DNA of 64,000 bases from Rebecca billardiae RCC1528 (GCA_965240325.2 OZ251230.1:124001-188000); one strand, 5' to 3'; shown: positions 24,748 through 34,707, numbered from the stretch's first letter. Notes: generated by a model from the sequence alone, not told the origin. A program made the numbers and translations.

Positions 24748-27261
24748 TCATAATATGAGCGGCGGACGACGATATAAGTCGTCTGGCGGTGGCATATCAT
24801 CATCATGCTCATCGCCGGCCCACCACCCGTCACCGGCCTCGTCAGTCTCGAGCTCGTCGTTTGACTCATCTGAGGTGTTGAGCAGCGTGGGCACCAGATG
24901 CTGCGTCCCAAGCAGCTGCGCTCGGCTGTAGTGGCCGTGCCGCGGCGGCCGCCGGTGCTGCGGCAGCGCGGGCGACCACGGCTCGCACGCTTGCTGCTGC
25001 ATCCTTTGGGCGCGGAGCGCGCAGCCGGTTGACAGACTCGCCAGGTCGGTGAAGACCATCTGCGCGACCAGCCGGTGGGAATCCGAAGCGTTGGGTGCCG
25101 CCAGCGCGCCCTGTGCCAGCAGGCTCAGCTGCGCTGTCGTCGGGGCTGGGGCTGCCGCCAGCAGCTCGGGCCCTTGGCCCCTCGTGCCTGCCACGCCGTC
25201 GCCTGCGGCCTCGCGCCCCGCGGTCTGCAGCGCGTGCTGCTGCTCCCCGAGGAAGGCGGCGAGGCGCTGTTGCGCGGGGCCGAGGCGCTGCCACGCGCGC
25301 TCTGCGCTCCACTCGGCCTTCCGCGCGGCGGCGGCGCGCGCGGGGATGGCGTGCGCGTGGATGGCCGCGAGCAGCCGCAGCCCGACGCTGTGCGGAGAGA
25401 AGGCACGCGCACCGCGCAGGCCGGCGCGCCCCAGCGCGCCGCGCGCAGCCGCGGACGCCGCGAGCTCGCGCAGCAGCGCGGCCACGCCGGCTGGCGTGCG
25501 CGCGCACGGCACGCGCGCGCGCCCGCCCGGCGCGCCCGGCGGCAGCCTGTACCCGTGCGCGCCCGCCACGTCGACGTAGCTGCTGTACGGGTAGAAGAGC
25601 GCGGGCACGCCGTGCGTCCACCACCACAGCAGCCGCGTGGGCGGGCGGTGGGCGGCGCTCGCGTTGCGCTGCAGCCGCGGCGGCCAGAGCAGCGCCACGT
25701 CCACCGCCTCCACCCAGGCCACGTCGTGGAACCGCCTCTGGGACGAGAAGTTGAACAGCGCCGGCATGTCGAGCAGCCGGCCTGGCGCGTCGGCGACGCC
25801 GCTCCGTGCCGCGGTGGCGGCGGCTCGTCGGGGCGACGTTGTTGCGGCCACGCGTTCGGTCGCGTCGTCGAGCTCGGGGGACTCGGCGACGGCAGCCTCG
25901 CCGAGTGCGGGGAGCGGCAGCAGCAGCCGAAGCGTTGCGTCGCCTTCGGGCGAGCTCGTCGACGCCGCCGCCGCGTGCGCGCCGCTCGGCGCGGCGGGTG
26001 CGCGCCAGTAGCGCGCGGTCGCGCGCGCATCGGCAGCGGAGGCGGTGGCGGTTGCAGCAGCTCCACGCGGCGCGTCGTCGGCGGGTGCGTCGGCCGCCGC
26101 GCCCTCGGCAGACCCGCTCGCGGCCGCGCTGGCCCCGGCATCCTCCGGCATCGCACGCCAGTTGTCTGGCTGCAGCAGCTCGCCCGAGCACAGGTACCGC
26201 TCGAACTGCGTGCTGCCGCCGCCCGCCCCGTTCTCAAAGACGAGCAGAAGCGCCGCGCCCGCGCTGCACGTGGCTGCGGCGAGGGCGCGCAGCTCAGAGC
26301 GCTCGGGCAGGTTGTGCTGCCCACCCACGAGCACGCCCACCACGCGCACGCGCCGCCGCGCCGCCTCCGCTGGCTCGCGCACGCGCCAGCGCCCCACGTT
26401 GGTGTGCTGGTGCGGGACGACGACGACGCTGTGCGCCGTCTGCTGCGCGCGCGCCGCGGCGGACGCGCGTGTGCTGTTGCTCGGGCTGGGCGCTGCCGCC
26501 TTGTTTCCGGCGTGCAGCGCGCGAGACAGCATGCGCGCGGTGTGCGCGCTCTGCACGACCAGCAGCGCACCGGGCAGCACCTGCTGGAACTCCAGCCGCC
26601 CGGCCTTCGCGATCCTGCGGATCTCGGCCACGTCGTCCATCAGGTCGTACACGAGGACCACGCACGCGCGCTCGAGCGCACGCAGGGCCTTGGTGACGAG
26701 CGCGCTGCGCTTGATGAAGAGCACGGCCGCGGGGGGGCGGGGGCCGTATGCGACGCTGCGGAGCCACGCCGTCTGGCGCAGGTCGCGTGCCGCGTTGCTC
26801 TCGCCCGGTCTGCGCGTGAGGTCGACCAGCTGCACGTCCGTGCGGCACCCAAGCGCCGCGCCCATCGCCTCCGCGTGCTGCACCATCGCCGCGAGCAGCA
26901 TGCGGCCGCGGAGCGCCTCCGAGCTCCTCCCGGTGACGAGGACGATGTCGACGCACAGCGGCGTCATCGCGCGCTCGGCTCCGCGCTCGATACCCCCGAT
27001 CGCGAACGCCACGGCGGCGGGCGCGCCGCTTGCGCCGACCGAGCGGATGCGTGCGCCGCCACCGTACGCGAGGGCGAGCAGGACGAGCTGCAGAGCGCCG
27101 AGCGCGAGGAGCGCGCCGAGCGCGCGCACTGCGCCGCGCGAGACACAGCGGCGATGTACGCTCATCACGCCCCAGGCTGCCCACCGCCGCGCGTGCCGCG
27201 GCAAGTAGCGCACCAGCCGTGCGCCCAGCGTCGGCGCCTCGTGGCGGAATCTGTACTGCAT
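24748..27261 (-). CDS. type II membrane protein, putative GT-B-fold glycosyltransferase
   Basis: Single N-terminal TM (ALGALLALGALQLVLLALAYG); VLFIKR, VLVYDLMDD, VVVVPHQH; C-terminal VDVALLW...RPPTRLLWWWTHGVPALFYPYSSYVD resembles the GT-B donor-binding segment. The start could be a downstream ATG. Confidence 0.6.
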   Translation of the reverse strand: MQYRFRHEAPTLGARLVRYLPRHARRWAAWGVMSVHRRCVSRGAVRALGALLALGALQLVLLALAYGGGARIRSVGASGAPAAVAFAIGGIERGAERAMTPLCVDIVLVTGRSSEALRGRMLLAAMVQHAEAMGAALGCRTDVQLVDLTRRPGESNAARDLRQTAWLRSVAYGPRPPAAVLFIKRSALVTKALRALERACVVLVYDLMDDVAEIRRIAKAGRLEFQQVLPGALLVVQSAHTARMLSRALHAGNKAAAPSPSNSTRASAAARAQQTAHSVVVVPHQHTNVGRWRVREPAEAARRRVRVVGVLVGGQHNLPERSELRALAAATCSAGAALLLVFENGAGGGSTQFERYLCSGELLQPDNWRAMPEDAGASAAASGSAEGAAADAPADDAPRGAAATATASAADARATARYWRAPAAPSGAHAAAASTSSPEGDATLRLLLPLPALGEAAVAESPELDDATERVAATTSPRRAAATAARSGVADAPGRLLDMPALFNFSSQRRFHDVAWVEAVDVALLWPPRLQRNASAAHRPPTRLLWWWTHGVPALFYPYSSYVDVAGAHGYRLPPGAPGGRARVPCARTPAGVAALLRELAASAAARGALGRAGLRGARAFSPHSVGLRLLAAIHAHAIPARAAAARKAEWSAERAWQRLGPAQQRLAAFLGEQQHALQTAGREAAGDGVAGTRGQGPELLAAAPAPTTAQLSLLAQGALAAPNASDSHRLVAQMVFTDLASLSTGCALRAQRMQQQACEPWSPALPQHRRPPRHGHYSRAQLLGTQHLVPTLLNTSDESNDELETDEAGDGWWAGDEHDDDMPPPDDLYRRPPLIL

Positions 27262-27331
27262 GGCAGCTTACGGTATCAAGATTCGTTGCGTAGCTAGTAT
27301 TTGAGCGGTAATACAGAAGCTCCGCCGCACG

Positions 27332-33251: not shown

Positions 33252-33843
33252 ATATAGTTTTATAACAATGCGCCACCTGTTTTATTCATCAGTTTGGCGG
33301 ATTGGCGGTCCTTTGCGCATATTTTCCGTGACGTGTCAGTGTCCTCAGTGACCTCAGGGCAGGCGTCAGTCAGAGTCAGCAAGCTGTAGGCAGCAGATCG
33401 GGCAGCAGGGACAAGTGATGTGCCAGGATCAGCCGCTCCTCGCCGTCGTGATCATCCCCCCCCCGCCTCGTAGTTAGTCTGCCCATCACTCTCCATCGCC
33501 GAGCGGAAGCCCGACCGTGTCCGTCACCGACGCACCGTCTGGCGTCGACGCGCGTGCGCCACCGCGGTGGTCGCGGTGCCACGCGTCGTCTAAGCCGTCG
33601 TCTCGAAGTACTAAGTAGTCGTCGTGCGCAGCGCCCCCGCGGGCGCGTGCCCCCGGGCGCACGTGCGACCGAATAACGACCCGAAACTGCTTATAATTAC
33701 TACTATTATGTATGACGATCTTGAAACAGTACTATATCATCATCATACCGTACGTATTTTACTTGTATCGGCACGGAAGAAAATACTCCTTGCTGATTCT
33801 TGCCGCCGGGCCGGCCGGCGGGAGAAAAAGCTGAAGACGGTGA

Positions 33844-34707
33844 ATGAGAGCAGCCATGTCACGCGCTGGGCGCTCGTGCTCGTGGCGGCTGCTCGTAGGC
33901 GGATTGACTGCTGTGGGAATCGCGTCCGCCGCGCATGGCAAGAACTGCGAAGCAGTCGAGTGCTTTGCTGAGGTCGCCGAGCACATGCGCTTTGCCAGTT
34001 CACTCGCAGTGCCTCCATGCCGCGATGACTTTGCCACGATGGCGCAGCGGCATTTCTTCCGCACGGGCAGGGCGGCGGAGGTTGGAGTCTATCAGGGCAT
34101 GTTTGCCGGGAAGAACATACGAAAGTGGCTCGGCCACTACTATGCCATCGACGCGTGGGCTTGGCGACCGGCTGACCCTGCGGACAAGAACTACAGGAAT
34201 GAAAGTAGAAACATGGAGGTGATGGCGAAGGCTAAGGGCGTGATTGACCGCGCAGTGAATGGAGACACCTCGCGCTACACGATGGTGCGCGCTCTTTCGG
34301 CAGACGCCGCCTCCCAGTTCCCTGACGGATACTTTGACTGGCTGTACATTGATGCTCTGCACACACACGATGCGCTCACGCAGGACCTTCACGCGTGGTG
34401 GCCCAAGCTGCGTGAGGGCGGGCTGCTGAGCGGTGACGACTATGGGGACATGACGGATACCGAGTACATCACGAAGAAGCGCTACCAGACCAAGATACTT
34501 GCACCCAGCACGACTGCAGACGGCAACACGACACATGCTGGTCTCACTCCTTACGCTAGTAAGAATAGCTGGGGAGTGATCTCAGCTCTCCAAGACTTTG
34601 CGCGCACTCACTTTGCCACAGTGCATGTTACGTGGTCGCTCGATTGCTATGCATGGCCAGCGTGGTGGATTGTGAAGCCGCCGAACTGCCTCGCCGACTC
34701 GTCCTGA
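33844..34707 (+). CDS. class I SAM-dependent methyltransferase (Methyltransf_24-like) with signal/anchor peptide
   Basis: AAEVGVYQG motif I, YAIDAW, FDWLYIDALHT, DLHAWWPKLREGGLLSGDDY. Intronless and visibly lower GC than the neighbouring genes. Confidence 0.9.
   Translation: MRAAMSRAGRSCSWRLLVGGLTAVGIASAAHGKNCEAVECFAEVAEHMRFASSLAVPPCRDDFATMAQRHFFRTGRAAEVGVYQGMFAGKNIRKWLGHYYAIDAWAWRPADPADKNYRNESRNMEVMAKAKGVIDRAVNGDTSRYTMVRALSADAASQFPDGYFDWLYIDALHTHDALTQDLHAWWPKLREGGLLSGDDYGDMTDTEYITKKRYQTKILAPSTTADGNTTHAGLTPYASKNSWGVISALQDFARTHFATVHVTWSLDCYAWPAWWIVKPPNCLADSS

Follow-up and report, generated by a model that had tools for sequence, protein, structure and literature searches.

The scales, mucilage and surface glycoproteins of haptophytes are sulfated and chemically unusual, and to our knowledge hardly any enzyme of their synthesis has been identified. 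Among the described enzymes that resemble parts of the present locus are the Golgi GT77 glycosyltransferases of land plants and green algae, such as RRA1-3, XEG113 and RGXT, which are type-II anchored proteins (family functions as given in PMC5371791). Here we analysed four consecutive genes, g1 to g4, in a 64,000-nucleotide stretch of DNA from Rebecca billardiae RCC1528 (GCA_965240325.2 OZ251230.1:124001-188000; hereafter the window, with positions counted from its first letter). They are genuine genes of secretory-pathway enzymes whose most likely role is to build or decorate glycans (Table 1). We propose, with about even confidence, that they form a lineage-specific neighbourhood of Golgi-type enzymes rather than a conserved, dedicated pathway cluster, that g4 is a secondary member of this neighbourhood and that co-regulation is plausible for g1 and g2 alone.

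The window has a mean GC content of ~72%, with values of at least 0.9 at third codon positions (GC3) in coding frames, in agreement with a compact, GC-rich genome of the Diacronema lutheri type (73.25% GC, 43.5 Mb, 14,446 genes, 61% coding, 45% single-exon genes; PMC8379373). All four genes carry the coding signature of the genome; the GC contents of the three codon positions (GC1/GC2/GC3) are ~0.77/0.58/0.88-0.94 in g1, g2 and g3. When the four proteins were compared with the whole window by tblastn, each matched only itself and no cross-matches between g1-g4 were found. The first-pass annotation had described four consecutive, mutually non-homologous genes, and this description is borne out by the coding signature and the self-matches. 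It had also given all four an N-terminal signal or anchor sequence and a glycan-enzyme class. The hydrophobic anchors are strong in g1 (aa 43-70, KD19 2.36) and g3 (aa 12-42, KD19 2.18), and the N-termini of g2 and g4 are weaker and signal-peptide-like (KD19 at most 1.3). The class assignments are solid for g3 and g4, from Pfam, and fold-based for g1; that of g2, where the profile score is sub-threshold, is plausible by motifs. All four products are predicted to reside in the Golgi and to have glycans as substrates.

The g1 and g2 genes are divergent, and their head-to-head ATGs, noted at first as ~70 bp apart, are separated by exactly 70 bp. Since the two starts lie this close on opposite strands, g1 and g2 must share promoter space, and the geometry of the spacer marks it as a putative bidirectional promoter. 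The g2 and g3 genes are tail to tail with 351 bp between them, and a gap of 2,279 bp separates the head-to-head g3 and g4. Comparison of the four upstream regions revealed no shared promoter word beyond GC-rich 9-11-mers. It is possible that g1 and g2 act on the same acceptor, to which a sugar would be added before it is sulfated, and g3 may be an independent, convergent neighbour.

To place this arrangement beside related loci, we compiled eight loci (7-21 kb) with g1-family genes, which represent six independent places because two pairs are near-identical (L001, L002, L003/L004, L055, L056/L057 and L058), together with the locus of the g3 orthologue (L005, 7.7 kb). Relatives of the partner genes (E <0.1) were found neither at the six independent g1-family places nor in L005, which covers 0.8 kb upstream on the g4 side, and the gene downstream of the g3 orthologue encodes an unrelated 653-aa protein. 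None of the neighbours in L001-L003 and L005 has a relative in any part of the window. Background synteny is thus nil, and the linkage of the four genes has not been kept against it. In terms of what defines a eukaryotic biosynthetic cluster, adjacency of non-homologous genes is thus present in R. billardiae and conserved linkage was not found in the relatives.

These results bear on the proposal, made in the first-pass annotation, that the four genes are a co-regulated module whose product would be a sulfated and methylated glycan containing arabinose. Such a module, in which the products would act sequentially in the Golgi on one sulfated, O-methylated (arabinose-containing) surface glycan, would account for the adjacency of four non-homologous glycan-type enzymes, which is improbable under independence, and for the 70-bp divergent promoter region common to g1 and g2. 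Nevertheless, none of the related loci retrieved keeps the linkage, the upstream regions have no promoter word in common, g2 and g3 are convergent, and g4 is set apart by 2.3 kb of sequence with microsatellites and repeats, by its distinct composition and by the inverted repeats that bracket it. Beyond the enzyme classes and the g1-g2 pair, we therefore found no support for the proposal, and we consider a true four-gene module quite unlikely.

The distinct character of g4 is evident at several levels. Its GC1/GC2/GC3 values are 0.58/0.51/0.69, and this GC3 compares with 0.88-0.94 in g1-g3 and 0.88-0.96 in most other Pfam-matched genes of the window (0.75 in TMEM14). The surrounding patch has a GC content of 0.59-0.61 and contains (TA)51, (CT)54 and further repeats. 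A perfect 34-nt inverted repeat, of which none is expected in shuffled sequence and which extends to ~56 nt with one 2-nt indel, bounds a 2,284-bp low-GC segment (32732-35015) that contains g4, and the outer flanks of this segment are both TA-rich. Given the GC3 and composition of the patch, the inverted-repeat bracket and the TA flanks, the most economical interpretation is that an insertion brought g4 to its site beside g3. The segment looks like a cargo-carrying non-autonomous element. It contains no transposase-like open reading frame (ORF), and the 34-nt repeat is missing from the metagenome and viral collections that were searched. It is probable that g4 came to lie beside g3 secondarily, inside an inverted-repeat-bounded segment that inserted in a TA microsatellite. 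We also looked for a larger inverted-repeat bracket around g1-g3, found only GC-rich chance pairs and rejected it.

A second class of repeats accompanies the g4 patch. Positions 32548-32628 and 33345-33470 are two partial copies of one repeat family, the former being a diverged copy of the end of the g4 segment. In X1, the sole public sequencing run whose contigs include parts of the stretch, and one not recorded as RNA, this family is ~15-fold deeper than unique sequence, and a 399-nt contig at a depth of 32 (unique sequence ~2) fuses the 32548-32628 piece directly to sequence resembling 33345-33470. The family is therefore multi-copy in the genome, and the copy in the window seems to be interrupted.

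A broader view of these data is that mobile elements assemble and reshuffle glycan-tailoring neighbourhoods. Here, g4, as a secreted glycan methyltransferase, would be the cargo of a young, protein-less inverted-repeat element, inserted into a TA microsatellite next to a glycosyltransferase, sulfotransferase and GT77 group, which opens with the divergent g1-g2 pair. We regard this generalization as unlikely. If true, it would point to transposon-driven diversification of a cell-surface glycan, perhaps under viral pressure.

We next considered how often such a run of genes would arise by chance, which the first-pass annotation had named as a possible refutation. In a parametric model that assumes independence and assigns 2-5% of 14,446 genes to the glycan-enzyme class, the expected number per genome is 0.1-1.8 for three such genes in a row and 0.002-0.09 for four (0.002-0.012 at 2-3%). 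These figures depend on a class that was defined post hoc and in which the membership of g2 and g4 is less secure. Four adjacent members are accordingly not expected by chance under independence, with the same proviso about the class. Pure coincidence would extend even to g1-g2: the enzymes would have unrelated substrates, g2 and/or g4 may not be glycan enzymes at all, and short divergent spacers would simply be common. This is favoured by the compactness of the genome (61% coding, 14,446 genes in 43.5 Mb; PMC8379373), by the post hoc drawing of the class of plausible glycan enzymes and by the expected number of three-gene runs, whereas the secretory-type N-termini of all four proteins and the rarity of a four-gene run under independence argue against it. 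Overall, we judge coincidence of this kind to be somewhat unlikely.

Several observations weigh against the favoured neighbourhood reading as well. The related loci are short (7-21 kb), fairly distant (37-63% identity) and possibly paralogous, and the g4-side flank of the g3 orthologue falls outside the coverage of L005. The family assignment of g2 is sub-threshold in Pfam. Furthermore, a run of four is rare if all four are glycan enzymes, which makes pure chance an uncomfortable explanation, and selection or element-mediated accumulation may act. Element-mediated insertion is, for its part, a non-selective route to clustering. In the neighbourhood reading, adjacency would have arisen in a compact genome rich in glycan-type genes.

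The protein encoded by g1 had no sequence match in Pfam, NCBIfam or the Protein Data Bank (PDB), nor in a word-based protein search. A HMMER search identified 116 relatives, 45 of them with E <1e-10 and the best at 41% identity, all unnamed or hypothetical. They include proteins of Pavlovales sp. CCMP2436, which among named organisms has the closest relative of any gene here, of Chrysochromulina parva and of Cymbomonas tetramitiformis, as well as Tara, ENA and JGI metagenome proteins. The usual length in the family is 430-530 aa; g1 is longer through its N-terminal anchor, an Ala-rich insert and a C-terminal tail. The insert (~aa 361-476, ~115 residues) is disordered in the structural model, and the possibility that it conceals an intron was ruled out because it offers no canonical in-frame GT..AG pair with a pyrimidine tract. 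The AlphaFold (AF2) model, which covers aa 85-660 and was built from a 38-sequence alignment, has a mean predicted local distance difference test score (pLDDT) of 77, with a core above 90. In VIA-align it gave Z scores of 19.9 with PimA (2gej), 19.4 with ManT (7qsg) and 18-19 with BshA, GtfC and SenB. The superposition spans both Rossmann domains (~300-315 aligned residues, root-mean-square deviation ~4 Å), and all 50 chains listed in the alignment are GT-B enzymes. Nearly all Foldseek matches were likewise GT-B glycosyltransferases of GT4 type, and the ESM-Atlas neighbours were GT4-type families together with one LpxB family (LpxB is also GT-B). The top Atlas neighbour is a bacterial GT4-sulfotransferase fusion family, which counts in favour of sequential action within a four-gene set.

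These comparisons indicate that g1 is probably an active GT-B fold glycosyltransferase of an unclassified family, as predicted from the model. It resembles retaining GT4-type GT-B enzymes (PimA 2gej, ManT 7qsg, BshA 3mbo, GtfC 4w6q) in that the model superposes on them with Z scores of 18-20. It is unlike them in its disordered Ala-rich insert, its eukaryotic membrane anchor, the lack of a sequence-level match to them and a motif of its own: the conserved columns of the family read RPPTRLxxWW[ST]HGVP at the site of the GT4 EX7E motif. The 38-sequence profile of the family matched no PDB chain and no Pfam family, and a single relative of the 38 had a sub-threshold Glyco_trans_1_2 match. With neither a profile match nor an EX7E motif, g1 falls outside CAZy GT4/Glycos_transf_1 as defined by sequence.

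Two of the related loci contain further enzymes near the g1-family gene. In L003 (3282-6530; run ERR14847148, a relative with 73% GC), it lies head to head, at 136 bp, with a TOD1_MUCI70 glycosyltransferase-like gene. This arrangement hints that g1-family genes are prone to pairing with genes for other glycan enzymes, and such recurrent pairing would speak against coincidence for g1-g2. In L058 (687-9679), from a metagenomic alga, the g1-family gene lies within 9 kb of genes for an NAD-dependent sugar epimerase, a Methyltransf_23 protein and a faintly matching DUF3431 protein, which may make L058 a further glycan-type neighbourhood, one with other partners.

Sulfotransferases that use 3'-phosphoadenosine 5'-phosphosulfate (PAPS) have a 5'-phosphosulfate-binding (5'-PSB) loop near the N-terminus after a beta-strand, followed by an R...S element that binds the 3'-phosphate (3'-PB). 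In g2, a 5'-PSB-like KTGST is present at aa 51-55 and a 3'-PB-like RRVFDWLVS ~115 aa further on, at ~aa 166-174. The six-frame translation of the window (128,000 residues) contains a single K[ST]G[ST]T, and its pairing with RxxxDxxxS is found in g2 alone. The match to Pfam Sulfotransfer_4 scores 17.4-19.2 bits (E=0.001-0.004) against a cut-off of 22.8. On this basis, g2 is quite likely to be a PAPS sulfotransferase: it is like these enzymes in the order of KTGST and R-x3-D-x3-S and in the weak profile match between and around these elements, and differs from them in scoring below the Pfam gathering threshold, a shortfall that lends some weight to coincidence. No homologues of g2 were detected by word-based protein search, metagenome scan or plasmid tblastn; a PDB sequence search gave nothing meaningful, and an exact look-up returned no record. 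Structural look-alikes in the Atlas were unnamed diatom clusters and one weak Sulfotransfer_1 cluster. The single-sequence AlphaFold model of g2 had a pLDDT of 36, too low for fold comparison. The contigs of run X1 include a 245-nt piece identical to part of g2.

The g3 product is solidly assigned to the GT77 glycosyltransferases by its predicted sequence. The unspliced ORF matches Nucleotid_trans/GT77 (PF03407) with E=1e-24 and 88 bits against a cut-off of 22, and exon 2 alone matches with E=2e-6. A DVD motif of the DxD type was seen by eye inside the matched stretch (LLCDVDTVW). PDB sequence searches with both exons yielded nothing meaningful. Because GT77 also includes xylosyl- and galactosyltransferases, arabinosyl transfer by g3 is unproven. 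Hence the earlier designation of g3 as an XEG113-type GT77 arabinosyltransferase holds for membership of GT77; its arabinosyl and XEG113 parts go beyond the evidence, as the family has other donors.

A word search found a single relative of g3, the unnamed protein P0141 on the 7.7-kb contig L005. It aligns with g3 in two blocks that lie in different frames: aa 118-371, with 63% identity, and aa 414-697, with 56%. Between these blocks, 44 codons of g3 remain unaligned; they open with GTGCGC and close with a C-rich tract and CAG. At the corresponding codon, the L005 orthologue is interrupted by a GT..AG intron of 94 nt that is required there to hold the frame. Since the L005 intron lies at the same codon, we conclude that 30323-30454 is an in-frame intron of 132 nt and that g3 encodes an 832-residue protein. 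This is the sole canonical in-frame intron candidate among the four genes, and it falls between positions 122 and 136 of the Pfam profile.

The C-terminal ~300 residues of g3 had no Pfam or PDB match when the exons were searched separately. They align in part with the L005 orthologue (to ~aa 697, and aa 815-876). Within this region (28934-29800, ~290 aa) there is a Cys-rich stretch, CPLDHVYDLPRW. Compared with the GT77 enzymes of plants and green algae, g3 is alike in its PF03407 match, its DVD motif and its type-II N-terminal anchor, and differs in having this extra conserved C-terminal region and a closest relative that is unnamed and only 56-63% identical. Upstream of g3, 38 nt from its ATG, an inverted repeat of 28 nt (31602-31629 and 31747-31774) is 96% complementary with a 117-nt loop, and may be a hairpin of the 5'-untranslated region or a miniature element.

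The g4 product covers the entire Methyltransf_24 profile (E=2e-16, 61 bits against a cut-off of 26.3), and its S-adenosylmethionine (SAM) motifs, EVGVYQG and LYIDALH, are intact in the translation. Its relatives were found at 49 bacterial loci, with 25-48% identity over at most ~170 residues; phage matches were short. A scan of the viral collection was blank, a PDB sequence search gave nothing meaningful and an exact look-up returned no record. A recent bacterial or phage origin of g4 was considered and dropped, given that even the best relatives are so distant over so short a span.

We then inspected 62 ORFs flanking 31 of the genes for bacterial relatives. These included GT2 (four), GT1/4 (two), Sulfotransfer_1 (two) and Acyl_transf_3 (two), so that at most 10 of the 62, with no ORF counted twice, are of glycan type, an enriched minority. 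This enrichment fits a role for g4 as a glycan methyltransferase, by analogy, and the recurrence of the same enzyme classes beside bacterial relatives would be in line with a four-gene module. On the other hand, Methyltransf_24 is a broad family and most of the bacterial contexts are not glycan clusters, as chance adjacency would have it. Thus g4 resembles the Methyltransf_24 members of bacterial polysaccharide clusters in identity (25-48%) and in the GT2, GT4, sulfotransferase and acyltransferase genes that flank some of them, and differs from the bacterial proteins in being eukaryotic, signal-peptide-bearing and monocistronic, and in that most of their contexts are unrelated to glycans.

Table 1. 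Positions of g1-g4 and of associated features in the window
Feature	Position	Strand	Description
g1	24748-27261	-	837-aa type-II-anchored GT-B fold glycosyltransferase-like protein
g1-g2 spacer	27262-27331		70 bp, AT-richer (~47% GC), between divergent ATGs
g2	27332-28582	+	416-aa probable PAPS-dependent sulfotransferase, signal-peptide-like start
g3	28934-31564	-	GT77 (Nucleotid_trans) glycosyltransferase, two exons
g3 exon 2	28934-30322	-	End of GT77 domain (profile positions 136-207) and C-terminal region of ~300 aa
g3 intron	30323-30454	-	132 nt, in frame, GT..AG, C-rich tract
g3 exon 1	30455-31564	-	Anchor and first part of GT77 domain with DVD motif
Repeat-rich lower-GC intergenic stretch	31565-32731		28-bp inverted repeat, element end 32548-32628, (TA)51
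(TA)51 microsatellite	32630-32731		Perfect, g3-g4 intergenic
Left inverted repeat	32732-32765	+	Perfect 34-nt match to reverse complement of 34982-35015
(CT)54 microsatellite	33144-33251		Perfect, g3-g4 intergenic
g4	33844-34707	+	287-aa SAM-dependent methyltransferase (Methyltransf_24), signal-peptide-like start
Right inverted repeat	34982-35015	-	TA-rich sequence follows

The other long ORFs of the window match the Pfam families MTP18, P450, RhoGAP, squalene/phytoene synthase, TMEM14, RCC1, RHD3/Sey1, Tsr1 and Nse4, and are unrelated to g1-g4. As these remaining Pfam-matched genes are unrelated, housekeeping genes, g1-g4 are conspicuous locally. The squalene/phytoene synthase gene (19423-21069) and the cytochrome P450 gene (8813-10561) lie 4-16 kb upstream of g1. 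A link between these two genes and g1-g4 was dropped, proximity being the sole evidence for it.

If g1 and g2, or all four enzymes, do cooperate, the locus would offer a small, testable entry into the chemistry of haptophyte surface glycans. With its 116 relatives, which come from haptophytes, prasinophytes and marine metagenomes, the g1 protein would define an unclassified eukaryotic GT-B family. The inverted repeats on either side of g4 give a modest but concrete clue to the mobility of genes of this kind. The main caution is that adjacent members of abundant classes of Golgi-enzyme genes, in a compact genome, do not establish a pathway cluster.

Two kinds of known system invite comparison with the locus as a whole. 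Like the glycan-gene-rich, transposon-rich outlier regions of prasinophytes and the metabolic gene clusters of plants, it combines non-homologous genes for carbohydrate enzymes with nearby mobile elements and a patch of lower GC content. It differs from them in occupying 10 kb of otherwise ordinary genome, with only g4 in the lower-GC, repeat-rich part, and in being known from its genes alone.

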